A stretch of 64,000 nucleotides of DNA from Syncephalis fuscata S228 (lineage: Eukaryota > Fungi > Zoopagomycota), in contig JAHLTZ010000036.1 of the NCBI GenBank assembly GCA_025786725.1, positions 62,001 through 126,000 on the forward strand, given 5' to 3'. The translations under genes were made by a program, and so were the position numbers. A model generated the notes under the pieces. It saw nothing but the letters and a program-made list of their open reading frames with translations. It was not told the DNA's origin and made no database searches. Positions 13,993-60,809 of the stretch are shown here, in pieces (position 1 is the stretch's first letter; each line of letters opens with the position of its first letter).

Positions 13993-15926
13993 CTAAAAGT
14001 TTGGATTATTACGAGTACGTGAGCGATTTGACGACGACGTGTACTGTTCTTGTCCATATCGAGATGTTTGCTGTGTTGGTGAACGCTGGGATCGCGGCTG
14101 TGATTGTTGTGGCTGTCGTCGTTGTGATGATATATACTGTGATTGTACTGTTGTTGATGACTGGAGTTCTGATGGTGCAATAAGTGGACCATTTCTACCG
14201 TTATTGTTGTGTCGATTTAAAGATTGTTGTTGCTGGTGTTGCGCCAATAGTGTACCACTACTGCCTGCAGTAAAGCTACGTGATTGTCGTTTTGGCTGTT
14301 GTGCTAATAATGGTCCATTGCCGCTTGTATTAGCATTATTTGATCGTGGCCGTGGTGGTAGTGTACTAGTCGTTTTTGCTCTTTGGTTCTTCGGTCGACG
14401 CACTGCTACCACGGGTCGTGTATATCGGTCTGACAATTCCCCATCGCTGGTATCGCCGGCATGGCTGCCATTATGGGATCGAGTTTTGTAGCGTCCAGAT
14501 CCAGCTGATGAATTACTAGTAGCTGGTGAGGCTGGTCGACGTGGCAATGGCATAGGTGGGTAGTCGGGACCAATACTAATAAAGCCGTTGTTGCCGTTGT
14601 TTTTAATGGCAGCGCGATTGCCAAAGGGTGGCAATGGTAGATTCGAATGACTACTGTAGTTTGATTCCATGTCTGAATCATCATATTCGCTATTAACGTC
14701 ATTGACATCGACACCGAGTCGTATATTATAGCCATGCTGTACCGAATGGCCGTAGATCGTTTGATCGATTGGCGCCATTACCGCAGACATGGCTTTTGAT
14801 TGCTTTTGAGCACGTCGAGGTTGCCTAGTACGTGTTCGAGAGGAGGATGAATAATCTGTGCCTACAGATTCACGTCTTCCACTATTGTACGCTGCAGTGG
14901 CTGGTCGTACTAGTGAAGCAAGAGAGGCATGCATGTTTTGATTATTGTAATTAATTCCGGCTGATGATAATCTTTTTGGATTAATTACGGCACTAGTTCT
15001 ATTGCCGACTGGTCTGCCACGTGCCCGTTGCATTTCTTCCTCAAGGATCCGACGTTCTTCTAATTCTTTCTTTCTCCGTTTGCGCGATTTACGCGCTATT
15101 AATTCAGAAACACTATTATGATATCAGTAATCCGCCATTTAACGGGTGTAATTTCTACTTACCGTTTATCGATTTTGTGGCACACATATTCTTTCAAATT
15201 GCCACGAATTCTAGAGACTGTTGGATGATAAAGTAAACAAGCTATGATTACAGATGCAATTGTAATAAGCCATAGTATATACGAAATTGTAGCTGTAATT
15301 TCAGGAAGTGTTTTACCAACTCTATGACTACGAATATTTGTGTTCACTCCACTGTTGCCGATAATAACGTTGAGTATCTGACGCGGCGAATTAACAAATA
15401 ATAGACGTTTCCAGCCTATAATGACGTTAGCTATTATGCATCATTATTAACACAGCATACCTTTTAATTGAAAGTAAATGAAATTAGCACTGCGGCCCCA
15501 AAAAGATTTTGTTACATTGATTTGTGCAAAAAGACAGAAAGTCGAATAGGATCTAACGCAATAATAACGATAGGCTGTTCTATTTGTATAGGCATAGGCA
15601 ATATCGCGGCTTTTAACAATGCGGCGAGCCTTGATCCATTCCGATATAAATAGACCTGTTGAAAGAAGCAATGATATACTGTAGATTACCAGACCAACAT
15701 AAAATGATCCACTCTGAGATCTGCCGGAAGTTTTCATATAACTAATTACTGTAATTGCATCGGCTATATATGCACCGACTGATCTCATAATCAGCACATA
15801 AACAATACAGTATCTTAATTGCATCCATGTTGAGTTATTATAAAACTCATTAATATCGACAAAATCAAATTTATGATCGGGTATAATTTCACGTTTCCAT
15901 TTTACCGTGTCTTTACGTTCCACCAT
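13993..15926 (-). CDS. Kch1/Prm6-family fungal potassium transporter, copy 1
   Basis: WKREIIPDHKFDFVDINEF, SRDIAYAYTN, YSTFCLF, LKG|WKRLLF and RGNLKEYVCHKIDKR, followed by a disordered S/R/Q-rich tail; two introns. Confidence 0.85.
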
Positions 15927-17023
15927 ATTAAAAATGGCTATTAGAATTAAAGCTCCACTTAATGAGTAAAAATCAATTAAATGAATCAATTGATAGTCGG
16001 TAATAATAATAATGATAAAGTTCAAGCCAAGAACAAATGTCAGTCTTTTGGTTATCGTCTGCTCTAAATAAACCAGCGTCGAGTAGGAAATCAAATAGGC
16101 AAGGCTGTTATAGACTGGCAATAAAGCCTTCTAAAGTATATCACGTGTACTGACTGAATAGCAGTATATAGTAAAGCAATAATGTAGAAATGGATTGGTG
16201 TAATAATAAGGAGCAATAGAAAGAAGACAACATGGCAATTTATTGCCTTATACTTTTGTTTGGCATGCGTGTTATATTTAGGCCATTCAAGGATTACCAG
16301 TAATCAGCAGGTAAGTTTATACCTTTACTGTGATGCATAAACCGGTTACAATCAATGAACGTGACTATTATGCAGTAGTCTTGGCAATATTATGGCTTGT
16401 ATTTGCCACTCATCACTGGGTAATCATTAAGCCAAAACGGCACATGTTTTATGTTTAATGACGCGAAACAAAGTCGGAAAACAATCTTGTTTATTGAGCC
16501 ATACGTACTTATTGGATTGGATACCTCATATAGCAGTGTAGATATAATTGTAATGAACTATAATGTTGCTATAAAAACAATAGCAGCTATAAGCATATAA
16601 AAGTGTGCAAAACATGAGTTAAATACATTTAGATACTATTTATTAATAATAAAACTAGCTAGGTGTATAGCTTTTTTTTAAATAATTGGTAATTAAGACT
16701 TGGAATACGGTTAAAAACGTGCAATTATAGATTTTGTGCGTGGAAATAAATTAATAATTTATAATTACCAAATACGGTAATGATAATGTATTAATATTTA
16801 AAATTATTGCTGCCATAAAACGGCTGATGTGTATATGAATAATAATACAGCTGATGTTTTAACTGACTAATTAAAAAACATAGTTTTGCTCATGACAATA
16901 TGAATATTAGTATTGACTGTGTCTCTAAATTATAAATCTATAAACAATAAGAATAATATTATATCGAGTTTAAGATTTTATTGAGCTATTTACTATATAC
17001 AATGTGTTAGATATATGAGCTAT

Positions 17024-18801
17024 TTACTCAGAGCTTTGACCATCACGGATATGCGAACGCTTTGATGAAGATGTATACTGCTCTTGTCCGTATCGAGATG
17101 GCTGTTGCGATTGTGATGATTTGGATGCTGTATTGAGCAAACTAGCTGTACCATTATTATACCTGCTCGAAGATTCCGATTGGTGTTGTCGTGGTGACGA
17201 TAATGTATCACTAATACGTGTATTGGAGCCGCTATATGATTTTTGGTGTAGTGGCAAGTTGCCAGTGCTGCCTGTTTTTGGACTTTGTGGTCGGCGTACT
17301 ACTGGTCGTGTATATCGGTCGGGAATGTGTCATCATTAATACTACTGGCATGGCTATTATTGCGAGATCGGCTCTTGTAGATTTCAAATTTGGTCAATGA
17401 ATTACTATTGGTAGGCGAGGCCGTTTGACGTGGCAAAACCAAAGGCAGATAGCTATCTTCAGTATCCTCTGCACCACTGTTGCTACCACCAGCACTGCCA
17501 CGACTGGCAAAGGGCGATAACGGCAATATTGGTGGGTCTTTAATGTCAGATTCAAGGTCCAAGTCTTCATAATCACCGTTGATTTCGTTGGCATCGACAC
17601 CAAGACGTGTGCTATAGCCATGCTGCGCCGAATGGCCATAGATTGTTTGATTGATAGGCGTCATTATATCAGACATGGCCATCTTTTGTTTTCCAAAACG
17701 GCGAGGTGGTAAAGTTTGTGCTTTAGACGAGGGTGAGTTATCGGCACTTAATAATTTAGTGTTGTTAGACCGCACCAGCGAGGCAAGAGAAGCGTGAGTA
17801 TCGTCTTTGTTTTCTCCCGCTTTTACGGATGAAGAACTTTCTATATTAATTGTTTTGTTGTTGCTAGCATTAATTGGTTTGCCGCGTGCTCGTTCCAGAT
17901 CTTCCTTAAGAAGTCGGCGTTCTGCTTTTTCTTGCTTTCTACGCTTGTCCCCGTTAGATTTTAGCAGCTTAGAAATGCTGGCACAATATAATTAATATGC
18001 TAGTCAATAGTTATAATTTACTGCTTACCGTTTATCAATTTTATGGCATACATATTTTTTTAAATTGCCACGGATTCTAGAAGCCGTCGGGCGATAGAGT
18101 ATACACGCCATTATAATGGAAACCAGGGTAAAACCCCATAAAACAGTGGAAATTGTCGATCCAATTCCTTGAATCCTTTTTTCAATATTAGGATTATAAA
18201 TGTCAAAACTGTTTTTTACACCTTCAATAGTAAGAATAATATTGATTATTTTATGCGGTGAACTAGCAAGAAACAAACGTTTCCAGTCTAGATCAATGTT
18301 AGCTATTATGCATCATTATTAACACAGCATACCTTTTAATTGAAAGTAAATGAAATTAGCACTGCGGCCCCAAAAAGATTTTGTTACATTGATTTGTGCA
18401 AAAAGACAGAAAGTCGAATAGGATCTAACGCAATAATAACGATAGGCTGTTCTATTTGTATAGGCATAGGCAATATCGCGGCTTTTAACAATACGGCGAG
18501 CCTTGATCCATTCCAATACAAATAAAACTGTTGAAAGAAGCAATGATATACTGTAGACTATGAAGGCAACATAGATGAGTGGATCAACCCTTCCTTCTAT
18601 CACGATTATAGCGAAGGATACTGCCGTAGATACATCAGCTATATATGCACCAACTGATTTCATAATCAGCACATAAACAATACAGTATTTCAACCGCATC
18701 CATGTTGAGTTATCATAAAACTCATTAATATCGACAAAATCAAATTTATGATCGGGTATAATTTCACGTTTCCATTTTACCGTGTCTTTATGTTCCACCA
18801 T
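17024..18801 (-). CDS. Kch1/Prm6-family potassium transporter, copy 2 (tandem duplicate of copy 1)
   Basis: Same motifs and intron positions as copy 1; a -1 frameshift in a C-run near 17321 splits the tail. Confidence 0.8.
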
Positions 18802-20560
18802 ATTGGCAATCACTGATACGACTTAATTTGAGTTATGGAATACAAATGGATTGAGTGAATGAGTTGATTGTTAATAGAATTAGGTTAAGACGAAAGATAA
18901 ATAAAGGTTTTTGCTTATCAATCGTTCTAAATAGATATCGAGTAGAACTTTAAACAAGTAAAGTAGCTATGTAGTAGTAGCACACTTTGATAGAGTGTAA
19001 CGCGTGTTAGTTAGACAGTAGTATTTAACAACGAGAGTAGTAGTAATGAGAAGAATAATACGGATAAAAATACATCACCTTACAAGATGACATTATATAG
19101 CGTTGCAGGGCACGCATACCGCTTCTAGACTATTCATGGGTATCTACAAAAGCAAGCAAGTTAGCTCATGCCTTTACTACAAATGCATGTACAACATGTT
19201 TTCAATAGAAAAGTGTAACAATGTGTAAAATAGCTGCAGCAATGTATGAAATACTTTCAACTACACTACACATGTTTGTTATCGTCAATGGCTAACTACT
19301 GGTTGCACAAAAATAAAACTATGCTTAATGTTAGGCGTATTCTTGTAAAAACATAACTATAATATTGGGCTGGTAACAATATCACTAAGAAATGCACCAT
19401 GGATTAGACAGTATGTTAAAGTCATATGTGAACAGTTACAGGGATAATGCATATAATGGATGTCAGCGCTAATTACAAAGAACAAAGAACCACATAAGGA
19501 TATAGCCAATAAATAATTGCTAACTGTGGACATATGCACAGTCACCTGAGCTGATATGCTGCATCATGCTGAAATAGTACAAGGCATTCAGGTTCTATCG
19601 TTAGTCACCCTTACTGCAGAATAATAGCATTACTCAATATCAATGAAAACAACCAATTTTTAGTTCCATCTTATTTGTTTTTAGTACCATACAAAGTTAT
19701 CCAGTTTATTATATAGGAACTGTGCATTAAACAACCAATAGAAAATAAGTCTATTGTTAAAGCAATATTAACTAACTAGCATGTTGTATTCTGAGTGCTA
19801 TGGCAGGTATTAATGAATGCCAAAGGCCAACATTATACGATAGTGTCAAAATAACATGCTACTTGTTCATTTAGGCTGCATTCTTTAAAAGCATAATTAT
19901 AGCATTTATTTAGGCCAATAAATTATTGTCTCATCTTTTAAAATATGTGGTGCTATTCCATTACTTTATTGATGTGTTTTATAATATCAGTATTTGGTGC
20001 TAAGTGACTTTCTTCTTTTGGTATATTCACTAATATATTGAATATGTTCTATGATAATGAGTAGTTTTGGGGTAAAATAACTTTATTCTTAATGCATTAT
20101 TGCTTCACTTGTTGTCCTATGATGTACCAACATGTTGGGTAGATTGACTTTTATTATTTACACTCCATTTATTAATGAATTAAACTCACATCTTTATAAA
20201 TATTGACCGACAAACACCTTCTACACTATATCCTTCCATTGCTTTTTTCACAAATCACTTTTATCACTCTAATTATTGGTATTAGCAGCTTCTTTAGCAT
20301 GGTAAGTGCATTTCTGGCTTGTTTTTATGCTATTTGAGCATATTCTGTGATATTCTCATTGTATGCTTTGTTTTACTGTAGACCATTACAAGTTGTGCTA
20401 ATAACATTATTATGATATCAATAGTAGTAGACCGCACTGTTGTATGGGCATAATTGCAAACACAATAACTGTATTGTCTATATTAATTGCTACTTTTTTA
20501 GAGATATATTAATGTATAGCAATACAGAATAGAATAAAAATGATATATATGTACTGAGTG

Positions 20561-21082: not shown

Positions 21083-23150
21083 CTAAAAATTGCCGCCGCC
21101 ATAAGGTGGTCGATGTGTAGATGAAGAATACGGCTGTTGTTGCTGATGTGGCTGTGGCTGTCGCGGCATAGGCTGCGCGTTACCACGATTGCCATTACCA
21201 TAGTTGCGTTGTGGTCGGCCACGTGTACCGTACCGGCTTGAAGCACCATCATCATCGCTTTCATCGCCATAATTGCTACGATTGTCGCCCTGGTGGTGCG
21301 GTCGGCCACCATATCGTCCTGATCCCATAGAAGAGACACTGCCAGTGGGGGAGGCCGGTCGACGTGGCGGCAGCATTGCATAAGCTTCATTTGTTGGGGT
21401 GTGATTAGGACCGTTGCCATATCGGTTTTGCAGACCAGATGGTGTTTGCGGTGCATTATAGTGGTGATTATTGTGCTGGTGGGCCAATCGGCTATCTCCA
21501 CCATAGTTAGATCCAGCATCCGATCCACCAAAGTCACTACGTGCATAAGGTGCTCGTGGTGGTCCACCATAACGAGATGTATCGATGGGTGGTGGTATAT
21601 GGTGTGGTGGTGGTGGTGGGCGATGATTGGGCCCGCCACGATGACTGCCGGCGTATTCACTGCCACCATAATCACTTCGACCATCGTCGTAACCATTGCC
21701 GGCTGGTCCATTAGGTGGATATGGTCGTCCTGGACGATCGCGTGCTCCACTGTAATCGCTACGCGTATCGTCATAATCGTTGGTATGATTATTATGACCA
21801 AAACGGCTTGGTTCAGCGTGCATAGGTGGTGCACGTTGATAGTTTTGTTGTTGTTGGCCATATCCTGCTGCTCGTCCATATGGATCTTGGTTTACAGGCA
21901 TAGGTGGCATTGGATGTGCCGAGGCATAGTTGGGATCCTGATGTACCAAGGGCTGTCGTGATACAGATGAATAAGTAGTACTTACGGATTCAATACTAGG
22001 TCGACGATACACGGCGGGAGCAGGACGTTTATCTGCAAATTTATTGGTCGTAGAAGGATTTGGTCGTACCATTGCTGAAATAGGACGGGAGTTATTGTCC
22101 ACAGCGTTCAATGTAGGCAAAGTAGGCTGACGTCCGGCGACAGCGGTAATAGCGGCCTTGCTAGTCACATCTTTGCCTTGAGCTCGAAGCATTTCCTCTT
22201 GAATACGACGTTGATCACGCTGTTGTTCCAAGATGCGTTTACGCGATTTACGCAATAGCAAATTAGCAATACTAAATTGTTGAATTAGTATTTGATACAT
22301 ATGCTACACTAAAGTATTACTTACCGCTTATCTATCTTATGACAAACATATTCTTTCAAATTGCCTCTAATGTTGCACAGCAGTGGCACATACAAAAAAC
22401 ATGCTATGACCGTGAACACGGCTGTGATGCACCAGAGTGCAAACGAAAAGGTAGACGTAAAGAACGATGTACGCAATCTTACATCTTGAGGACTTGTAGG
22501 ACGAAACACTGCCCAATCAATACCATGGCCACCCTTGGTAGCAGTGGCCCATATATTAATGGCATTAAGTACTTGACGTGGAGCGTCAGCCAACAACATA
22601 CGTTTCCAGCCTATATTCCACCGTTTGTTATTAGTGTTATTCATAACAAGTGGACTATTGATAGTTACTTACCTTTTAATGTAAAGTAGACGAAATAGGC
22701 AATGCGATCTTTAAGGGATTGCGTAACACCAATTTGTGAGAAAAAGCAGTAATGTGAATAGGACCGAATGCTGTAGAAACGAAAAGCGGCGATATTTGTA
22801 TACGCATAGGCAATATCCCGACTAGCAATAATTCGTCTGGCCTTCTTTCCTTCCCATAGCAGTAATATAAATGATACAGCAATAGAGGCAAGATAAAGCC
22901 AACGTCGTATGTCTAACGGAATCAAGATATCCTTTTCCTTAGACATGCCGTCTGATTTAATCAGCAGATAAGCGGTCCATATATCGGCGCAGTACATTAA
23001 TATTGCCTTAATAACGACAAGAAAAATAAAGCAATAGGTAATTCGTCGGATAGGAGAAGAATCGTAAAATACTTTAACGTCTACAAAATCGAATTTGTGA
23101 TCCTGGACAACTTCACGCTTCCATTTTGCGGTGGAGCAACAGCAACCCAT
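21083..23150 (-). CDS. Kch1/Prm6-family potassium transporter, copy 3
   Basis: MGCCCSTAKWKREVVQDHKFDFVD...RGNLKEYVCHKIDKR with a P/G/Y-rich tail; two introns. Confidence 0.88.
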
Positions 23151-25880
23151 GTTGTTAAATAGTGCTGCCACCTAAGTGTTAAATATAATAGTAGCAAGTC
23201 GTGCAACGGCCGTCAATACTAGTATAATATGTATGAGCGGTGATTGAAAACCGTTTTATCTACTGCGCCAAGTACAGGTAGATATTGTTTATCTATCGAA
23301 GTTTAAAGATAAATTGTTGTTTGTTGTTGTTATTATTGCTATGGTCGATATTGCTATCACTGCTATTAATGCTGTTAGCTGTTATTATGCTTTTTAATTC
23401 AGATGACAGCAAGTATAGTATTTAATGCAGTCTATGAACCAATGAATAGCTCAAAAGTATCCTGCAATATCGAAGATAAAAATAAGTTCAATTCTGAACG
23501 AGAAGATAAAGGAGAAAGAAGTATGCTAGTGCGCCTTACGGAACCAAGCCGAGGCCCAAGCAGAAAAAATGCGATATAAAAAGAATACTACCACTGTTAC
23601 TGCGAATACACAGGTGAACTTGATTTATCTGCCAAGCATGCCTAAGTACTTGTGTACATCTGCTGCAATGATGAGAACAGTAGCGGTAAGGTTAGTAAAG
23701 ATAGCTGTGATAGTTGGAGTAGCGGAATGTACGAGAGAAGAGATAAACCGCTGAAACAAAAGTAACGAGATGAGTATCCTCGGCGATAAAGAGGCGACAC
23801 TTTTTGAAGAAAGGAGATGATAGAAAGAATGTTCCAAAAATAGTAGCCAAGAGATGTCAATTGCTAAATGTGTTAGGCCAATGCATGAGTGATTGAGTTT
23901 GTCAATTCTAGATTTGATGGATTCTATTAAACTATTGCTTTATAGATACTGTGTTGCATCAGCTCTGAGCAGTTATCTACAAGCTTATACTGGTCAATAC
24001 GCAATAAATCTATGTTTTATACGCACTTGTGTTTATGATAATGATACCGAGTTTAGAAATGAATTGATTGTATTACATTTGTCCCGTTGCCCTACACATA
24101 AATCTATAAATACGACTAATAATAGATACCATTTAAACAGGTAGATCATTGCCTCAGTTGTCGAAATGCACCTAGACTATTTCATTAATATATCACTAAT
24201 ACTATATTTTACAATCGTATTATTTGCTGTTAAATGACTTTTATCCTTAATACGTTGGTTATCCAACTATCAATCTGTTCTATGATATACCGACATGTTG
24301 GGGAACTGGCTTTTATTATTTACACTCCGCTTATTAGCTTATTAGTATTTTATCTCACGCCTTTACCATCTCTTAATTGCACAGCTTACAGTTTACATGC
24401 TATTTTTAATCTTTATTTTATTTTATACAATATTTATTTATTAAACCCTTTTCGCACTTTATTTATGCTGCTAATAAATACTAAATATTCTAATTTGCTA
24501 TAGATTATTATTGCAGATCATAATGGTGGCAGTTTGTGTAGTTTCGACAATAGCAAGTCACATTGCTGTACCGTTATTGAAGATTCGTATCGATAATTGA
24601 ATTAAAATGACCATAGTCATATATAGATAATTTCCAAAATAGTGACTACGGTAACTATATTGCTATTATTTCCTTACCAATTACTTTTCTTTTTCTCTTT
24701 GCTTTATTTCACCATTTAAATAGCCTTATATATTGGTATTAATCTATGGCGTATAAGAGTGTTAATCAAACAACGCTGCGCCAATCTTAGTCACTGGGCT
24801 GTCTTTTCTAATTTGGCATTGTATTGGATATTAATTATCGTTAATGACTATTAGTTGAGTGCTTTTTGGTTATATGTACTATCGATCTAAATTTCAAATA
24901 TACACTGCTATTCGAGATTTGTAGCCATGGATGTTTCTATTGTACATACTAGAGATATTCATAACTTTTACATAACATATTAGTATAGCTAACAATAATG
25001 GTGCAAATGTGTTAATGATGAAAGGCTAATAAAACACAGAAAAGCATATAACCAAATGAATGAACAAAAAAAGAATGCATGAATAATAATAATGTAATTA
25101 TAGTATACAAAACCAAGTGAATACTATGAGCGTAATAAATCGACATTTGTAACAATACAGCTGGCAATAAATAAACACTTTTACTACTTTTGCTTAACCA
25201 ACATACGATAAAACGATAAAACGTAAAGTAATCAGTATAATAAATTTGTTATCCTATACATATATATTTTTAACGTTATATAACCGTACAAGTTTAAATC
25301 TATTGGTGAGGCTATATCCATAAAAGGACTATGGATAAATCGGTCATCATCAAATGAATGATTTCTACGTTATTTTATGGTAGTGATGCTTTATCATAGT
25401 AACTACTAATCAAGTACAATGACGATATAAAAAAGAATCTCCAATGCATATAAATGGTATTGTCATTACCTAGTTGTGTTATAAATCGCATTTTTATGAT
25501 GGATAAACTGATTGGCCTCTAACATGTGATAATGGGATAAACTAAAGGACATCATACGATATTATATTGCTCGTGGTCTTTGTTCACACCATTATACGAA
25601 CTATATATTGCTCTGCACGCGCGTTTTGTTTCGCTCATGCCTAACCAGCTTCTTCTCCTTTCTAATCTTCCTCTCTTAACAAGCTTGCTTATTTCATTTC
25701 AATACTTGTATTGTCAAATTGCTACCTGCAGCTAACTGCATACCACATTTCCTTATTTTTCTATAAGCTTTAGTTGCGTGTGCGTTGATAATCACCCTGC
25801 CTACAGCCTTGTTACTCACCTTTATTCTTTATCTTTTTCTACAAACAAAGTAGCAAACATCTGCGGAAACAGTGTTCATC

Positions 25881-42201: not shown

Positions 42202-44451
42202 TTATGCATGATCCTTTCTTCGCTTTTTACGTTGGTTATTTTTCTTGTCATCATCATCATCGCATAGACCATGACCAAATTTAGCAGTCATAATTTGATT
42301 AATCTCCTGCGTATCTTTGTTAAATTTCCGACTTTTACGTAAACGTTGACGACGATCACGCTCCTGTTCGCGTCGTGCCTCTTCGCGTGCCTCTAAATCA
42401 CGCTCTTCTTTATTTGGCCAAAATTGCGATGAATCAGTCTGGTCTATAGCATTACTATGACTACGTGTAAAACTGTCGTTATCATCATCTTCGTTATTAT
42501 AGGTATTTTTTGTTGATTTCATTGGTGCAAAGCCGGCAAGCATATCAAGTGTATGATCTGCATCTTCTACTATATTTTGTCGCTCTTGATGCATTTCTGC
42601 TGCTGCTGCCGCGGCTAATCGAGATTTTGCCGTCCAATGCTGACTACTACCATTGCCAATGTCGTCATCATTGACACCTAGACCAAAGGTATCGTAGTCA
42701 ATAGCGTCACGATCTGTCACGTCAAATCCAAGTTGTTTCGTCGGCTTAGAGGCCAGTTTACGTTTTAGTGCGCTAATTGGTGCTTGCCCACTGTTAGTCG
42801 TACTATTTTGTAATCCTTGTGTTGCTTGTTGCAATATTGTATTCACAAAATCAGTTGATTGTTTAGTATTCATTGGTATATTTGTAGATATATCATCATC
42901 GTCATCCTTGTCAAAATAACGTGTCCTTGGTTGTTTCTCAATAGATATTTGTTGATGTGATTCAATAACTGGTCCTAGCTCTGGTCCTAGCTCTGGTCCT
43001 AGCTCTGGTCCTAGCTCTGGTCCTAGCTCTGGTCCTAGTTCTGGTCCTAGCTCTGGTCCTAGCTCTGGTCCTAGTTCTGGTCCTAGTTCTGGTCCTAGTT
43101 CTTTATCTAAAATAAAATCCATGCTTTCAAGAGCTGTAGCTCCAGTTACATTATCTTTAATATCTTCAGATACATCATCTTCATCTATAATACATTCATA
43201 ATCACGTCCTACATCTGCAAAAATATCTTCATCGTCATCGTCACCATCATTCAGCTGTAATGCATTTAGCGTTGATGTTACATTTGGCTCTAGCTTTTCT
43301 TTTATAACTGATACAGTAGATGATAATGTTTTAGGCGCTGTTCGTAATGATGATGGTTCTACTCGAGTTCCTGTACGAATATCTTCAATAATACCGCATA
43401 TTTTACTAATTACAAGATCGTTGGCAGCAGATCCTGATCCACGCATGCCAACTTGTCCTTCGCCTTTACTACGAATAACTGCCGTAGGAATATTCCATGC
43501 ATCGCCTGCCTTTCTACTGCCATCTGATCGTGTTTCATCAAGTTGAAATGTATATGCCATACGTCCATATCGAAATAGCTCGTTCAATTGTAGTGTAGGT
43601 GGTTGCTTTAAGCTTGAAACGGCAATGGCATGAATATTCCGCGCTAATCCCGTACGAATCTTCATTTCATCTTGGCTACTCGTTTGAATGTCGGCAACTT
43701 TACTCGCTACTTTTTGTGGTGTCGACCGAATTGTTCTATTATCATCCTGTGTATCATCCTGTTTAATCTCGCGACGGCGTTTATCAAGTAGCGAATAATC
43801 AAGTCCTTTAACTAAATGCGTATGTGACACATCACCGCCTAGCAATTTAAATCGTTCTTCCATTTCCTGGCGTGCCAAACGCTCGCTCGTCTCAGCATCC
43901 TGTGTTTCGTGGTGCAAATCCGCAAGTAATTGCTGATTATCACTCGCCAAATTGGCAAGAATACGCTCTGATTCAGCATAGTCTGGATTAATACCTTCTC
44001 GGCGTTCTTTTGCACGATCACGATATTTTGCAGATGATAAAGTCTCGTTGTCGTCGTCAATATCATTATTGCGCGGCTTTCTATTCTTATTGTATTACTT
44101 TACACTATTTGACAGATCATCTTTCTATTTACCTTGATCGTGGCCGCGGTCTAGCAAATTCGCCCTTGGTTTCCGCTATTGTTCTATTAATACAATTAAT
44201 AGATTAGACAAGTGTTTCTATTACTATCAAGTAGATAGCTTTTATACTTACTTATCAAATGCAATTGATTTCTTAGCAGGTCGAGCAGATTGTTGCTGTT
44301 CTAGTTCAGTTTCTATCGTGCTTGATTGCGACGAATGCGGACGAGGAGTCTGCATCAATCGTCGAAAGTCATCTTGTGTCAATCTATATAGCAGTTAGAA
44401 TAGTTGTAAAAACCAACTGCTATTGAATAGTTACCCTGAATTGTCAGCCAT
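42202..44451 (-). CDS. RED/IK-like spliceosomal protein
   Basis: N-terminal LTQDDFRRLMQTPR and LGGDVSHTHLVKGLDYSLL (RED_N); DIFADVGRDYE; basic C-terminus. Confidence 0.88.
42969..43101 (-). repeat. Coding 12-bp tandem repeat, (ELGP)x11
   Basis: CTGGTCCTAGYT repeated 11 times on the + strand. Confidence 0.95.
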
Positions 44452-48608: not shown

Positions 48609-49176
48609 GATGGAAAAAGGATACTTGTAGTCAGAGTGTGATGGAACACGTTGTTGGAAACAACAATATAGTATACAATCACTATCATCATCATCATTAG
48701 TGTCATCACCATGAGGAGTGGTTACAAAGTCACATTTATTCTAAACATAAATTCCAAATGGAAATGTAAAAAACAAATACATTATAAAGTATACAACATA
48801 TGTAGCAAGCAATTAAACTACAATTTACTACAATTTACTACATTGATTTACATTGATTATATTAAGTGTACAAACAAAAATATAGCTATATAACAACAAC
48901 TACTGTGTAATAAACCAACTTGCTGCGCATGATATTCTACTTCCAGTATTTGCCCTTTAGCGTTTTACTTTTAAAACAGCACCCAAAGATGATACAAACC
49001 AGTTAAGTTGATCCTGAACTCCTTAATTACATGGAACATGGCAGCACTGAACAATTGCATTATAAAAGAAGGTGCTAAATACCAACACTTTAATTTCAGT
49101 TGTTACTTCCTACAACTTTATCTTCGTTTCATTACGGTCTCAACTCTTCGATAGATTGATCTACGTTTTACGCAAC

Positions 49177-49799
49177 ATGCCTTCGCTATTCCGTTACTTG
49201 ACCGCCACTCTAGTGATTTCCTATGCCGGCATAGGATTTAGCGCGCCAGCATCAATGTTCAACAATATGAACACCGCATCTGGGTCCGGCTTAACTGATC
49301 CATTCTCGCAGACTGACATGGGTGGTTCATTTAGGCATAGTTCAACTGATCCATTTTCAAGAACTAGCACAGGTGGTTCATTTGGGCTTAATCCAACCGA
49401 CCCATTCTCGCAGACTGGCATGAATTCATTCGGGCTTAATCCAACCGACCCGTTCTCGCAGACTGGCATGAATTCATTCGGGTCCAATTCAGCTAGCCCA
49501 TTCCCGCAGACTGGCATGAATTCATTCGGGCTCAATCCAACCGACCCGTTCTCGCAGACTGGCATGAATTCGTTCGGATCCAATTCAGCTAGCCCATTCC
49601 CGCAGCTAGCATGATTGGTTCGCCAGTTCGGCAAAATAACAGAATAAACACCCAAAACATTCTAAGCTCTTTAGGCCAATCCAACTCGGGCTCATCAGAA
49701 GCAGCTATGAAATCAAAACAAAACGTGGAACTGCTTAGAGACCATTATCAACGTCAAGCGGAATTAAGACAGAATGTGCGGTCAAATCAGCGCTTCTAG
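49177..49799 (+). CDS. Putative secreted protein with 16-aa tandem repeats
   Basis: Signal-like MPSLFRYLTATLVISYAGIGFSA; 48-bp repeats (GLNPTDPFSQTGMNSF / GSNSASPFPQTGMNSF). A one-base loss near 49606 separates it from ORF 49611-49799. Confidence 0.65.
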
Positions 49800-50338
49800 C
49801 CACTTCAAATTAGATATCTATTTGCAAATCTATTAAATAATAAATTTGATTTTAGTACTAGATTTAATGAATAATTATCATGATAAGCTAATTAGTATTT
49901 AATGAAAGCAATGCAATAACTATATAAACACCTTATTTGTAATAGCATAATAGTCGACGATAATGAAGCATCTAAATAAAAAAATGCATAGTGTAATTAA
50001 GTTTCTTTAGAAGCTGAGTATATGATTTTTAGCTAAATTTATTTTATATCATGTTGCTTCCCATATACTTATAAATAGAGCCCGTGTTTACCATAAGTAG
50101 CAAATGTGTATTTTTTATTCCAAATTAATTGCCAAGAATTCTTTCATGGCTAATTGCATTAATACTCCGCCAAATATAAATTAGTAATGCTTTTTTGGAT
50201 TCAACGTTTATTGCAACTAGTATCTTTTTCCTTACGATTAAAAACTCAACCTACTTCTACTCTTTATTTTATAGAAAAAAGCCATATTATATTAAGCAGC
50301 ATTTATACTTTACGATTTACCAACCTTTCTTTTTAAAC

Positions 50339-51004
50339 ATGATAAAAGTGGTATGGGGTTCAGTGTTAGTGTTGGTACTTTTACATGCCAACACCAATCA
50401 TGCCTCTCCTGTACCTAATCCATTATATGGTAACATGTACCCAGGCTCAATGGGCAACATGTTCGGCAATATGGACAGCATGTATGATAATATGGGTGAA
50501 AGTTTTTATAACCCAAACAACCAGTTTAACGGCAATATCGATGGAGGAATAGGAAAACGTCAACAAGCATTGAAAGATGCAAAAAAAGAACATAACGTCT
50601 CTTTTACCGCCGAAGAAATGTTAAAGGCGGCTTCTGGTGATTCAAAAGATCAGCAAAAACAACAGGAACAAATGGCGGGCCAAGGAATAGCAGCAATGAT
50701 GTTACAAAAGCAACAAAATTTGCAATATTCTATGGGTGGTATGAACGGTATGAACGGTATGAATACTATGGGCAATACGAACATTATGAGTGGCACGGCG
50801 AATGGAGCACCAACTAATAGAGCAAGCATAAGCAGCTTTCTTGTCAATCCTGCTGGCTTATCAAATGGTCAATCCAGTACCATGGAGACTAACATCAACG
50901 GAAGCGGATTTGGTAATGCTGGAACAAATTCAAACATGATGGGTGGCTCTAATATGATGGGCGGCTCTAACATGATGGGTGGCTCTAACATGATGGCGCT
51001 CTAA
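50339..51004 (+). CDS. Putative secreted Met/Asn/Gly-rich protein
   Basis: Signal-like MIKVVWGSVLVLVLLHANTNHA-SP, an internal KR site and (NMMGGS)n repeats. The true stop may be near 51040 if the last repeat is frameshifted. Confidence 0.7.
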   Translation: MIKVVWGSVLVLVLLHANTNHASPVPNPLYGNMYPGSMGNMFGNMDSMYDNMGESFYNPNNQFNGNIDGGIGKRQQALKDAKKEHNVSFTAEEMLKAASGDSKDQQKQQEQMAGQGIAAMMLQKQQNLQYSMGGMNGMNGMNTMGNTNIMSGTANGAPTNRASISSFLVNPAGLSNGQSSTMETNINGSGFGNAGTNSNMMGGSNMMGGSNMMGGSNMMAL

Positions 51005-52101: not shown

Positions 52102-54290
52102 ATGTGCTGCACTACAGCAAAATGGAAACGTGAAGAAGTGCCAGATCACAAATTTGACTATATCGATGTCAATGATTTTTTCAACGGCTCTATTATCCGT
52201 CGTTTCACATACCTATTATTATTTGCGGTTATTATTAAGAATATTCTTGTCTATTTGGCCGATTTATGGACAGTCTATCTATTATTTACATCTCAAGAGT
52301 GGGCAGCTAATATTCAGTCACTGAAAAGCCATTTAGACATCATTAAATGGATTTTCTTTGCTTCTATCGTCTCTTCCTTTCTTTTATTACTATGGGAGTT
52401 GCGTAAAGCGGTCCGAGTGGTTAAAAGCCATGATATTGCTTATTCGTATACTTGTACTGGTGCATATCGCTTTTATAGCGTTCGATCCTATCCGCATTAT
52501 TGTCTTTTCTCGCAAATCAATAACTCGCGAAAAAAGATTGACCGAGTAGCTTTCTTTGTCTACTTTACACTCAAGGGTAAGTTGATTAATTCGGATATTC
52601 TGGTATATAGCGATATTTAATGCTGCAAACAGGATGGAAACGGTTTTTATTGGCAGAAGCACCACGTCAAGTGGTTAATGGCATTTCACTTTTCTCAGTA
52701 TATATTGGTAAAAAGGGATTTGATATTAAAAAATTTTACGAGAATGGTGAAACAGCTCAGGCTCGTATTATGTTTGGCCTTATGACATTTACGTTTTGTG
52801 TTTGGGCCATATCTGCGTTACTCTTAGCATTTGCAGCTATTTTATATGTACCATTGTTGTGTCAGATTCGCGGTAATCTTAAGGAATACGTTTGTCATAA
52901 GATTGACAAGCGACTAGCACAACTATTGCGTAATAAATCTCGTAAACGTATTTTGGAGGAACGACGTGAACAACAACGACTAGCTCAAGAGATGCAATCA
53001 CTTCCAGGTGCTAATACTGGTGCTTTGTTGCCTTCTCGTGAACCAACCTTACCTCAAGTACAATTATTGGAATCTAGCACTAGACAGCCAATGCCTCCAA
53101 CTAGTCAGAATGCCGTAATGATATTACCTGACAATAGGCCGCCACCATTGCCGCATTCCAATGCACCAATGAGTTATCAACAACAACAACAACAGCAACA
53201 GCAACATCATCATCGGCCATCGTATAGTATATCCAATAGCCAATATAGTGCTGGTAATCAATACTCAAATGAAGCCACTAGCCAATATAGTGGACGTCGA
53301 CGGGCTGATAGTACTGTGTCGTCCACTTCTGGCTACAGTCAATCACGTCCTATTCAAGGTGCAGATGGTATTAACTATGGCGGTGCCAGACCTCCTATGC
53401 CGCCTATACCACCGCATCATGTCAATTCAAGGCAGCAACCTATACCACCACCATCTCAACGCCCTACTCATTTGTACAACGGCAATAACCATAATGAAGG
53501 TGATCATATTCCTCAGGGATATCGATATGAAAAAGAATTGAGTTCGCCACTATCTGATAATACTTATGATATACCAGATAACGTATCCGAATCAAGCCAT
53601 CGATATGCAAATCAACCCATGGATGACACTGGTAATCGTCCATTACCAAGACCGCCACAGTCTTCTAGTTCTAATTATTCAAAGTCACAGCCTGTACCAC
53701 CACAATCCTCGTCATCTGCTCATTCAAATAAATCACCAACACAGCCATCAGCTGGAGCTGCAAATCCCAATCGCTATCCATATCAGAACATATATGATCA
53801 TCCACCACGAAATGAAGCAGAAGAGCCTTCCAGTATGGCACAGCCATTACAAGGGCATATTCGACACTTTTCCAATGAAGGACATCGTTATGCTTCGTCG
53901 GCTACCGCTTCTAGTGTTCAGAATACATCTCATTATCCGCCTATGAATCGACCGACAGAAATTCGACATCAAATGGCCAATCATCCAGCAGAACACAACT
54001 TTGTCCGTGAAGATAATAGTGTTATGGGAGATATGGATGGTGGTGAAGAAGAAGATAATGATGATGAACCAACGATTAATCGGTATAATAATCGTGGTAG
54101 ATATGCTGGTCGTCATAATTATCAACAACAACAACAGCAGCAGCAGCAACGGCCACCTCAATCACAAGGTTCACAACATTCTAATATGCGTTATCCACCT
54201 CAAGGTGGTCCTTCATCACAAGCACCGCATCAGCTAAGACGTCCTGGTAACAGTCAAAATAGTCATCAAGGAGGCAACGTTTATTTCTAA
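52102..54290 (+). CDS. Kch1/Prm6-family potassium transporter, copy 4
   Basis: MCCTTAKWKREEVPDHKFDYID...LKG|WKRFLLAEAPRQ...RGNLKEYVCHKIDKRLAQLL; one intron; Q/P/N-rich tail. Confidence 0.88.
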
Positions 54291-55598: not shown

Positions 55599-55963
55599 AT
55601 GTCGTCATCGTCCCTGATAGCGTCTGCATCAATATCAAAGTGTTTACTAGTCGATATTGAAGGTAAAACTACACCAATAAGCTATTTTGTTTATTCACGT
55701 ACAACTAGCTTATTTTTGGACGCAAGTAAATGTTCAAGATAGTGTAGCATTTATTTGTCAACAAATAGTATCTATGTAAGCTATAGTATTAGTTTAAGCT
55801 GGCAGATTAATAAAACAATAGAGGATTGTAATAATAAATTTGCTGAATTCCCTATTATTTCTGGTTTTAACACCGCGATTGATATTAGAAAGACTTTCAA
55901 AACTAATATGCTATGGCAGATGAATAACGATTAAAAGACTGATGAATTAAGACGATTGCAAAA
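55599..55963 (+). pseudogene. Degenerate enolase-phosphatase E1 (Utr4/ENOPH1-like) fragment
   Basis: LLVDIEGKTTPISYFV resembles the HAD motif LLDIEGTTTPISFV; later NMLWQMNND*KTDELRRLQ resembles WQMxxDRKxxxLKxLQ with an in-frame stop; the rest of the gene is not found. Confidence 0.6.
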
Positions 55964-56355
55964 TAGGTATAGCAATTAGTCGAACATCGCTGTATTTTAT
56001 AATACCAATAATTAAATTTACTATATTATTAGTACTGACAATGCATTACTAATATTTATATGCAGATAAAATATAGTCACACATATACATATTAATAAAT
56101 ATACTCGATGAAACTATATTTATTACTACAAGTTTGCATAGCTGAGTATGTGCAGACAAATACAGACTTGTTGATATTATAATGCGTCCATTGATTAAAG
56201 GTTGAATAAACTGGGGCATTGGATGGGGCTTGGTAGATGAATGGACCGAATGGCGTATTTGTCAAATGATCTTGATTCTTGCCGAATGCATATCTAAAAT
56301 ATATCTAGCTTGCAGGCTAATTATACTAACAATGCCGCTGTCTTGACTGCACCGG

Positions 56356-58833
56356 TTAGTCTATAATCATACATAAATATATAAAATATTATGTGTTAAC
56401 ATATAAATTAGCATTATATAATGCCACTTACTACCTATCAATAAAAGTCATCAAACACAAAGTGCATGGTATATATTTAGCGCATAGTAAGTTAATATAC
56501 AATATTACTTACCAGCTATTAATACAAGTCATCAAACACACAAAGTGCATGATATGTATTTAGTGCATGGTCAATCAATATACAATGTCACTTACCAGCT
56601 ATTAATATAAGTTATCAAACACACAAAGTGCACGGTACATATTTAGCGCATATTCAGTTAATATACAGTACTACTTACGAGCTGTTAATACAAGTTATCA
56701 AAAACGCAAAGTGCACAGTATATATTTAGCGCATAGTAAGTTAATATACAGTACTACTTACGAGCTGTTAATACAAGTTATCAAAAACGCAAAGTGCACG
56801 GTATATATTTAGCGCATAGTAAGCTAATATACAGTACTACTTACGAGCTGTTAATACAAGTTATCAAAAACGCAAAGTGCACGGTACGTATTTAGCGCAT
56901 ATTCAGTTAATATACAGTACTACTTACTGGCTGTTAATACAAGTAATCAAGCACGTAAAGTGCACGGTACGTATTTAGCGCATATTCAGTTAATATACAG
57001 TACTACTTACAAACTATTAATACAAGTAATCAAGCACGTAAAGTGCACGGTACGTATTTAGCGCATATTCAGTTAATATACAGTACTACTTACTGGCTGT
57101 TAATACAAGTTATCAAAAACGCAAAGTGCACGGTACGTATTTAGCGCATATTCAGTTAATATACAGTACTACTTACTGGCTGTTAATACAAGTTATCAAA
57201 AACGCAAAGTGCACGGTACGTATTTAGCGCATATTCAGTTAATATACAGTACTACTTACGAACTATTAATACAAGTAATCAAGCACGTAAAGTGTATGAT
57301 GTGTATTTAGCGCATATTCAGTTAATATACAGTACTACTTACTGGCTGTTAATACAAGTTATCAAAAACGCAAAGTGCACGGTACGTATTTAGCGCATAT
57401 TCAGTTAATATACAGTACTACTTACGAACTATTAATACAAGTAATCAAGCACGTAAAGTGCATGATATGTATTTAGCGCATAGTCAGTTAATATACAGTA
57501 CTACTTACGAGCTATTAATACAAGTCAGCAAACACACAAAGTGCATGGTATGTATTTAGCGCATAGTAAGTTAATATATAGTGCCACTTACTGGCTGTTA
57601 ATACAAGTAATCAAGCACGCAAAGTGCATGGTATGTATTTAGCGCATAGTCAGTTAATATAGAATACTAGGGGGACGTTGCTAGCCCAGTTGGTAAGGCT
57701 CCGGGTTCAAACCTCAGTTTGAACCAATCCTTAAGTGGAAAATCCCCCCCCCAGTTTTCTCTAGTTAACAAATTGCAAACCAGAACCCAATAAGTAGGTC
57801 CGGAAACAAGACCTTGGCCAGAATAGTCGAGGAAAACTCAATTGGGACCAACTTCAAGAGAATAGTGCTGTGTAGCACCATTTAAAAGAAGATGGCCCCC
57901 GTGTAAAATCTATATGGACCAGATTTTGCGCAAAAACGTGGCAGTCCACCCGTTAAAAGTTTGGAAAAGTCCAAATATAGTGGGAAGCAGCGCAAATTCT
58001 TCAATTATGCGCAGCGGGGGCTCACAAGCTCTTCAAAATAAAATAAAATAATATAGAATACTACTTACGAGCTGTTAATACAGGTTATCAAACAAGCAAA
58101 GTGCATGGTATGTATTTAGCGCATAGTCAGCTAATATATAGTACTACTTACTGGCTGTTAATACAAGTCATCAAACACACAAAGTGCACAGTATATATTT
58201 AGCGCATAGTAAACTAATATACAGTACTACTTACGAACTATTGATACAAGTTATCAAACACACAAAGTGCACATTATATATTTAGCGCATAGTCAATCAA
58301 TATAAAATGCCACTTACGACCTATTAATACAAGTCATTAAATACGCAAAGTGCATGTTATATATTTAGCGTATAGTCAATTAGTATAAAATGCCACTTAC
58401 TAGCTGTTAATACAAGTTATTGAACATGCAGAATGCATGGTATATATTTAGCGCATGATCAGTTAATATACAATGTTACTTACTTTCTATTAGTATAGAT
58501 ACAGAATATCAGTATCAGCAATATATTTTATATTATTTTACATTAAAAACAACGATCAGTTATTATGCCAATAGCTATGTGCAATCAACACTTACCTTAT
58601 ATTGGCCATGTCCATTATTTGGATGACATACGGTAAGTGCTGGAACAATGAGTCGATAATCACAACTTACCGGCTAATACCATCGTTGGTTGAACATAGT
58701 GTTAGTAAACATATCAAATCTATTACAACTACAACATACCACGACGGACTTGGTTTGGATTAGCATCCACCATAGTTGTACTGGCTACAAAGGCCACGGC
58801 GAGGGTGCAGACGACGGCAATAGAAAGCTTCAT
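56356..58833 (-). CDS. Micro-exon gene encoding a predicted 54-aa secreted Pro/Thr-rich prepro-peptide
   Basis: Exon 1 (58833-58740) encodes a signal peptide plus NPNQVRR and ends in phase 1 at GTATGT. Then 22 three-nt exons, each flanked by YAG and GTAAGT. The last exon starts ACTAA at 56360. Spliced: MKLSIAVVCTLAVAFVASTTMVDANPNQVRRAETSLPTPTLPIPTISTPPPAGN*. Confidence 0.8.
56425..58490. repeat. 83-bp tandem array (~20 units; each unit is an 80-nt intron plus a 3-nt exon on the minus strand)
   Basis: CTTAC-NNN-CTRTT recurs every 83 bp; one unit is 81 bp and one is 477 bp because of an insertion. Confidence 0.97.
57670..58048 (+). mobile_element. tRNA-derived SINE-like retroposon, 379 bp
   Basis: 15-bp TSD TAATATAGAATACTA at 57655-57669 and 58049-58063; 5' GGGGG; A-box TAGCCCAGTTGG (57682-57693); B-box GGTTCAAACC (57704-57713); (AAAAT)n tail. 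Confidence 0.85.
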
Positions 58834-60809
58834 GGTGAGATTGATTTGTTAAGACAAATAAGTAGAATGAACGATAGAGTGTAGTGGTATAAAGTAGGTA
58901 GTAGTAGGTATTTGGCAGAAAGTAGAATATGATGCTGATACTGCTAGTTAGTTGTGTGTATTTTGTAGGCTATTTAAGTCTATGCTTATGCTGCGATATC
59001 AATATGCTATGTTGTATAAACCATGCCATTGATGTGCGATGTAAACCAATAACAATACATCCACGTGATAGTTTAAGGAATACGTATACCAACACATCGA
59101 CAATGTGATAGCATGCTGCCCCGCCTTTACTTCAATTTGTTCAGCAATTACACAATGATGTGGCAATACAAATGATTCAGCACACATGCGGTAGAAATAC
59201 ACCAATTGATGTGTACGGTTTTGTTACACAATTGAACTATGTGGTGTAAACTGAATCTACTGGTTTTAAAAAACAGTGACAGTGCATCGTTGTGCCTTTA
59301 CCATCACTTTCACTGACAATTTTAATTACCAATATTTGCATGCATTTCAGACAGTGCTTATGGATGCAACAGTAACATTAATACACCAACTATATACTTC
59401 TTTACATATAGCTATTGTTGTGCATAAACTAGCTGTAGCTTTTCGTGTCATGGGAATATACCGTTTGTTCGTATATGCATTCAATTCTACACTGGGCTTA
59501 ATTACAAAAATAAGCATTCTTTTTTCAACATGATGCTACTAAATACCGATAAAGATCCCGCGGATATTCGTGAATTGTTTTTATTATCGATTTATGTTAA
59601 TTATATACATATTTCATAATAAGATATTGTATTTAGTCACTAAAAGTGTCAATTGTTTGCTTTTAAGGTGGCGTGAACTGTCTAAATGATATGTAGTTAT
59701 ATGTGCAAATATTGGGATTATGCCTATAAATCTACTCCGTTTACATATACTCAATCTTGATTGTGCAACAGCAGTGCATGCTACAGCAGGCAGAGGCATT
59801 AATGTCATGCAAATGATTTGCGCAACAATAGCTTGATTAGAATAACAGATTTACAATTTGAAATTTGTACTAAATGTTACGCATTTTGGATCATGTTTCT
59901 GCACTCTGTAATTCAAAGCCAATGACGTATTGCGTAAATTATGTCCAATTCAGCGACATTATTCACTGATCATAATGTTTGTCGTTTGTTTTTTTCATAC
60001 CTTCACACATTAGCTATTATTTCCTAAATAGCATGGAAATAAGCAATATTCAAATGCAGCTTAGCTATTTATTTACTATTATATTGTATATCGTCATACG
60101 TAATAGCTGTAGCCATTGAGTGGTATCGATAACTAATGGCTAGTCATTAAACCTACTGCTTATTATTGACACTAAATTATGTTTATTGCTTTTTTTCTAC
60201 GCCTGGATGCATACTTGCTTATTTAATAATAAAATCTACTCATGCATATTACATTGTCATGAGTTGGATTAATAATCTGATTGTTTACTGGTTCTTAAAA
60301 GACATATGATATTTCTATCTTCATATATACAGGCAAAATAAGCTATATTAAATCATATCTGTTAATCATATAACATATTGTGTGCCATTTAGTACTATAT
60401 ACGTATGTTTTTATGAACAGTTTATTAACTATTTAGTATGATGCGGTAGTTAAATAACTATCTTTGCTCAGTTGAAGCAAATATTTGTTCTATTGCTCAT
60501 GGAACTGAGTGGTAAATGACAGCAATCATCTACTAATTTATATAGCATGGAACAGTTATAATGAATCCCCAATTAAATAGGTTAATTCAAGTCTTTTTCT
60601 AACAGGAATCCGGATTTGTTGAGTCATTAATTAATGCGTCGTCATCACTAACAAGCAGTAACCTATTACTCATCTTTTGATCGTTTACCAGCTGGCCATC
60701 ACCACGCAGCTGATATTTGTTTACTCATCGGTTCTACCATCTATTAGCACTACCTCTATTGATCTATCGATACTAGCGCCAGTAGTGTTATACTTGATCG
60801 TCTATTATC

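Follow-up and report, generated by a model that had tools for sequence, protein, structure and literature searches.

Serial three-nucleotide exons in the mycoparasite Syncephalis fuscata: a predicted secreted-peptide gene family whose diversity appears to be generated in DNA

Can exons of three nucleotides be joined in series to encode a secreted peptide? This question was raised by a locus on the minus strand of a 64-kb stretch of DNA from Syncephalis fuscata S228 (contig JAHLTZ010000036.1, positions 62,001 to 126,000), here called the window. Syncephalis is a genus of mycoparasites (PMC13188720). S. fuscata itself is a poorly studied mycoparasite. A preliminary description of the locus had proposed 22 three-nucleotide exons in 83-bp units made by tandem duplication, preceded by a signal-peptide exon with an RR site ending in phase 1, and joined in this phase to a stop codon in the last exon. 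The whole window was scanned on both strands for the pattern YAG-N(k)-GTRAG with k from 0 to 15. For k=3 the minus strand presented 22 matches, and every other class of k and strand had 0 to 7 scattered matches. The 22 YAG-NNN-GTAAG sites, situated between 58673 and 56432, reproduced all proposed coordinates and triplets, and TRF recovered 83-bp tandem arrays with about 89% matching. Phase 1 was open throughout for 54 codons, giving a predicted coding sequence of 165 nt and 54 amino acids, whereas phase 2 encountered a stop at codon 4.

All parts of the gene lie on the minus strand. Exon 1 (58740-58833, 94 nt, phase 1) agrees with the earlier proposal and codes for a predicted signal peptide, a short pro-region and the RR site of Kex2 type. 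It is conserved in 18 aligned family members, which, judged from sequence, have a basic N-terminus, a hydrophobic core and a conserved cleavage region of small residues. The 5' UTR (58834-58940) has an approximate start, which contigs cannot fix; contig depth, 2204 in the bin 58902-59028, dropped to about 2 or 0 farther upstream. Micro-exon 1 (58671-58673) carries a triplet that is identical at the equivalent position of the paralogous loci L046, L047 and L049. Intron 2 contains a silenced unit (58596-58598) with an intact donor and an acceptor mutated to TAT; in L047 and L049 the acceptor at this place reads TAG and the exon is live, and L046 shares the silenced state. Micro-exon 2 (58484-58486) is followed by array A (58069-58483), five 83-bp units of an 80-nt intron and a 3-nt exon that hold micro-exons 3 to 7, and by array B (56432-57669), fifteen units with micro-exons 8 to 22. 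The coding start of the last exon consists of 2 nt and a TAA stop (56356-56360), with an RNA contig joint at 56360. The 3' UTR (56110-56355) has an approximate end, contig depth being about 1 below 56108.

The 22 symmetric micro-exons contribute 66 of the 165 coding nucleotides and nearly the whole mature peptide, predicted as a single Pro/Thr-rich product of 23 residues behind the one RR site. The micro-exons had been regarded as one-codon exons; this description does not hold, since they are in phase 1 and every codon straddles a pair of exons. It is correct that 22 of the 23 codons end in C or T, but this is weaker evidence than had been claimed, because the units arose as tandem copies and the C/T wobble bias recurs in exon 1. 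Across 18 units of the gene the donor and acceptor words were invariant, and the three exon columns were among the most variable (0.40-0.62 versus an intron mean of 0.13). Folding of the introns of five units revealed no common structure. No one position stood out as a strong branch point: TRAY words were concentrated at -19/-16 and at -6 from the acceptor.

Introns are mostly 80 nt long. Intron 8 reaches 474 nt because of a SINE-like insertion of 379 bp (57670-58048, plus strand), antisense to the gene, which the preliminary description had overlooked together with the silenced unit of intron 2. The insertion has several features of a tRNA-derived SINE, namely a 15-bp duplication of its target site (58049-58063 and 57655-57669), an A-rich tail and dispersed copies, 87-93% identical, in other family loci. 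A/B-box-like words were spotted by eye in its head, and ARAGORN and Rfam gave no match. RNA-like contigs cover it heavily. The SINE-like element (~380 bp) was seen in or beside the loci L017, L050, L051, L054, L056 and L060. Elsewhere in the window, four paralogous membrane-protein ORFs (15447-16121, 18319-18813, 22665-23171 and 52102-54290) share an N-terminal motif and have low-complexity tails. Two small ORFs with signal-peptide-like starts (49072-49614 and 50195-51004) contain Met/Asn/Gly-rich repeats of 16, 6 or 3 residues and are possible secreted repeat proteins, and a 12-bp repeat in 11 copies (42969-43102) adds a four-residue repeat to a 582-aa ORF.

A genome-wide scan with the three-nucleotide unit pattern, a step already proposed in the preliminary description, revealed a large gene family. 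In the 29.4-Mb genome 3,354 adjacent pairs of 3-nt exons were present, versus 0 for a reversed-pattern control. With about 20 units per gene, these pairs would correspond to roughly 150 array loci. Of 321 candidates for exon 1, at least 150 gave a scored match, a count that includes some intronless genes and probable allelic copies. Many of these matches form near-identical locus pairs, of which one member often lies close to the end of a contig or on a contig of small size; such pairs may reflect allelic copies or an assembly broken at the arrays, thus the family counts are probably inflated. Units of 4-15 nt (394 versus 371 in the control) and of 0-2 nt (88 versus 116) were at background genome-wide, so that the unit exons are strictly of three nucleotides. 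The background level of 0-2 nt units also means that the genome-wide scan gave no sign of recursive splice sites or zero-length exons, in which a donor GT comes immediately after an acceptor AG.

A profile search with exon 1 matched only S. fuscata proteins. In 20 paralog loci and the C1 loci (L048 could not be parsed) exon 1 was 94 or 97 nt long and ended in phase 1 with RR. The number of micro-exons per paralog locus ranged from 3 to 47, and the last exon had the layout of 2 nt plus TAA in 12 of 13 paralogs, where it was located by that rule or seen. The paralog peptides are rich in Cys, Gly or Ala; the Pro/Thr richness is specific to the gene in the window. Four proteins (P0004, P0013, P0016 and P0018) are conventional small secreted proteins that carry the signal peptide and RR leader of the family, and P0018 combines this leader with an SVWC (single-domain von Willebrand factor type C) domain above the Pfam cut-off. 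P0013 is intronless. Its C/T wobble bias occurs in exon 1 too, and a search with one pattern found no micro-exon parent. Intronless members (L066-L069 on G000 C157, C24, C361 and C350) share their leader with array genes and have the C/T wobble bias of the micro-exons; in L068 the reading frame is shifted relative to L066. The intronless copies may be either the ancestral form or processed copies. Family-type arrays at G000 C19:3862-8205 and C24:513729-516642 contain higher-order repeats with a four-unit period of about 313 bp, adjoining a series of repeated units that resemble 15-nt exons.

Whether the micro-exons are joined and translated can be read from their junctions. In phase 1 a stop codon arises if an exon ends in T and the next exon starts with AA, AG or GA. 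Genome-wide, adjacent pairs of T followed by AA or GA were seen 9 times versus 129 expected, a 14-fold gap; the expectation was derived from the marginal counts for an AA/GA start (462 pairs) and for a T end (937), with the T-end marginal taken on the downstream exon as a proxy and with pairs that are not independent. The identical stop-forming pair two units apart occurred 116 times, about chance level if the denominator is near the adjacent-pair value, as was assumed. T followed by GG, which codes for Trp, was common (92 among the first 100 matches listed). Within 18 genes phase 1 contained a single stop, where within-gene shuffles gave 6.6 (P=0.004); the 24 phase-2 stops matched the chance expectation. 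Since stops are purged at adjacent pairs and kept at distance two, selection acts on neighbours only, and stop avoidance between neighbours requires translation. The junction codons thus point to micro-exons that are joined in order, constitutively, and translated, with frequent skipping disfavoured. The alternative that survives best is that 3-nt exons are often skipped, each gene thereby giving a library of isoforms, as Schistosoma micro-exon genes (MEGs) vary by skipping (PMC4015677). All exons are symmetric, so the frame survives any skip, exons of 3 nt are hard to recognise, and no skip in the gene of the window would create a stop. However, genes that skipped frequently should have purged the stop-forming pairs two units apart as well, and these are at about chance level.

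RNA-like data were available as contigs of one public run (X1), probably RNA, over 55600-59400; rare isoforms are dropped by contigs. The preliminary description had made its case depend on transcription of exon 1, and the contigs cover it. Contig depth lay on exon 1 with the 5' UTR, on the last exon with the 3' UTR and on the SINE-like insertion; it was mostly 0-300 over the array introns and about 0-2 outside the gene. One array-intron bin reached a depth of 5,500 with several differences and looks like contigs of paralogs or repeats. An 88-nt contig of the last exon (56259-56346, depth 920) had 0 differences to this locus, and the nearest paralog compared differs at 3 places. For this reason the expression is assigned to the gene itself: the locus is transcribed. 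Two contigs of splicing intermediates, with intron on both flanks, contained 4 and 2 joined micro-exons. The four-exon intermediate has the triplet order of the paralog L046, and none of the 9 genomic matches to the acceptor context of the intermediates, all inspected, presented a 6- or 12-nt unit. Both intermediates probably derive from close paralogs. That the four exons keep their genomic order, and that one dominant contig from exon 1 to the last exon was listed, argues further against a library of skipped isoforms, which we regard as unlikely.

The dominant contig, with a depth of 865 (versus 920 for the 88-nt contig), links 56360 to 58740, the predicted splice sites. The letters between both sides were reported as not known, the 66-nt junction being unread. 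This joint also fits a very improbable second alternative, in which the array is excised whole, as a single long intron, or by 83-nt steps with nothing left behind, and the mRNA consists of exon 1 and the last exon. The product would then be only the signal peptide plus RR-D, and the array would be vestigial or a selfish repeat. The plus strand has C at 56361 as well as at 58740, so that a direct join should leave one shared base, but 0 were reported. This favours inserted letters at the joint, the figure perhaps being uncomputed for joints of this kind. Joined micro-exons are present in contigs, and the avoidance of stops between neighbours needs translation; both speak against a clean excision of the array. 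That the array is a non-coding satellite with chance splice-like words is a negligible prospect, for although it is an 83-bp tandem repeat with about 89% matching and some metagenome matches to the pattern are plain satellites of one repeated triplet, its splice words are invariant and its triplet most variable, every family array examined is preceded by the common signal-peptide exon, always in one phase, and both the stop purge and the RNA-like evidence oppose it.

We therefore consider it probable that S. fuscata possesses a family of secreted peptides made by ordered phase-1 joining of 3-nt exons, with the variety stored in DNA. In this mechanism the conserved exon 1 would supply the signal peptide and the RR processing site. 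Spliceosomal introns of ~80 nt would be removed and the 3-nt exons joined in genomic order in phase 1, and the main mRNA would presumably carry the complete 22-exon junction. The secreted precursor would be cleaved after RR by a Kex2-type protease, releasing the 23-residue Pro/Thr-rich peptide. Editing of the peptide would come from exchange between units (unequal crossing-over or conversion), from point mutations in triplets and from lost acceptors. Since one unit of intron and exon corresponds to one residue and the frame is kept, editing would proceed about one residue at a time; each unit event would preserve the frame and change one or two residues. With such unit-wise editing of the arrays, peptide variety would be stored in the DNA of many genes. 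Several observations touch on these steps. The paralog pairs L052/L053, L001/L030 and L055/L057 differ by whole units. Acceptor loss has silenced one unit in the gene of the window and L046 in comparison with L047, and in L053 in comparison with L052. Close paralogs differ by triplet changes too. In 16 of 16 genes the exons were more divergent than the flanking intron ends; the low intron divergence may reflect splice constraint or homogenisation instead of diversifying selection on exons. Altogether, peptide diversity appears to be generated in DNA, where units are gained, lost and mutated.

The lifestyle of the fungus, the family size, the high expression and the variability make effector or recognition peptides at the host-fungus interface the most likely role, at about an even chance; antimicrobial, adhesive and self-recognition functions are possible alternatives. 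The wider proposal is an undescribed diversity system in which a unit of one intron and one 3-nt exon stands for one residue, which, spread over more than a hundred genes, forms the main host-interaction repertoire of the mycoparasite, and which has close parallels in Ascomycota and Basidiomycota. For this proposal as a whole the balance is level between true and false. If it is true, recombination of the satellite type creates hypervariable secreted peptides one residue at a time, and such peptide genes are invisible to current aligners and gene finders.

The arrays considered as parallels come from metagenome contigs. A scan for three consecutive 3-nt units yielded at least 120 stretches, of which 80 were examined and some were plain satellites. 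Forty-two variable arrays on 37 contigs, with 770 exons, contained 5 phase-0 stops versus ~32 expected from composition, a deficit that may be partly due to avoidance of TAG near acceptors; phase-1 stops numbered 115. At L111:12599-13850 a predicted signal-peptide exon ending in KR precedes about a dozen putative phase-0 3-nt exons with diverged introns that would encode a Cys-rich peptide. The sole named neighbour match on this contig is Wilcoxina (Pezizales). The L105 array adjoins a NACHT gene with relatives in Tricholoma and Amanita, and three further metagenome arrays adjoin HET genes. In most of the metagenome arrays no signal exon was evident. In L071, L080 and L121 runs of phase-0 3-nt exons lie downstream of what is apparently one shared conserved ORF segment; these runs and that of L105 may be tails of larger genes. 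Long variable arrays of up to 78 units, in phase 0 rich in Asp, Arg and Leu, were seen at L114:13-5700, L130, L134 and L149, and no leader was found for these four. Judging by these contigs, phase-0 arrays resembling those of Syncephalis occur in ascomycete- and basidiomycete-like DNA. Because they differ from the Syncephalis family in phase and leader, separate origins are suggested. Other fungi may thus harbour hidden peptide genes of the serial 3-nt exon type.

Among known systems the Schistosoma MEGs are the obvious comparison: 72 genes with a signal peptide and short, symmetric exons no longer than 36 bp that vary by skipping (PMC8293314, PMC4015677). The gene in the window likewise has a predicted signal peptide and a coding sequence mainly of short symmetric exons, and the likeness extends to a multigene family in a parasite, serial arrangement of the exons, small predicted-secreted products and transposons nearby. 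In S. fuscata, however, the exons are strictly 3 nt, there are thousands of them in over a hundred loci, and the introns are tandem copies of one unit. The evidence favours in-order inclusion with DNA-held variety, whereas MEG variety is ascribed to skipping. The preliminary description had seen here an analogue of MEGs, and this stands for the secreted-type leader and the symmetric micro-exons; variation by exon skipping does not, according to the indirect stop-pair test, which leaves room for rare skipping. Membership in the Schistosoma MEGs was rejected on account of the strictly 3-nt exons in tandem-copied introns, the lack of any sign of selection for skipping and the lack of homology to MEG families in the exon-1 profile search. 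That fungal spliceosomes include exons of 1-3 nt is known from the long-read annotation of Coprinopsis cinerea, with 27 three-nucleotide exons in 26 genes (10.1101/2024.05.10.593147), thus about one micro-exon per gene, in contrast to 3-47 in series in S. fuscata. Fungal Kex2-processed repeat proteins (KEPs; PMC6339444) are also secreted precursors from which peptides are freed at dibasic sites. The S. fuscata gene has one RR site and one peptide, and its repeat resides in intron-exon units, not in the protein; several similar peptides between repeated KR/RR sites are absent, and membership in the KEPs was rejected. The literature searched, with most subscription journals outside its scope, contained no account of genes with serial 3-nt exons, nor of micro-exons in Syncephalis. 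With dozens of 3-nt exons in succession and junction codons under selection, spliced gene structure is here at its limit and offers a natural system for the handling of serial minimal exons by the spliceosome and for the order of intron removal. The large, apparently highly expressed peptide family has been mostly missed or mis-modelled by public annotation. Compared with MEGs, it appears to follow the micro-exon gene idea with a different logic of diversification.
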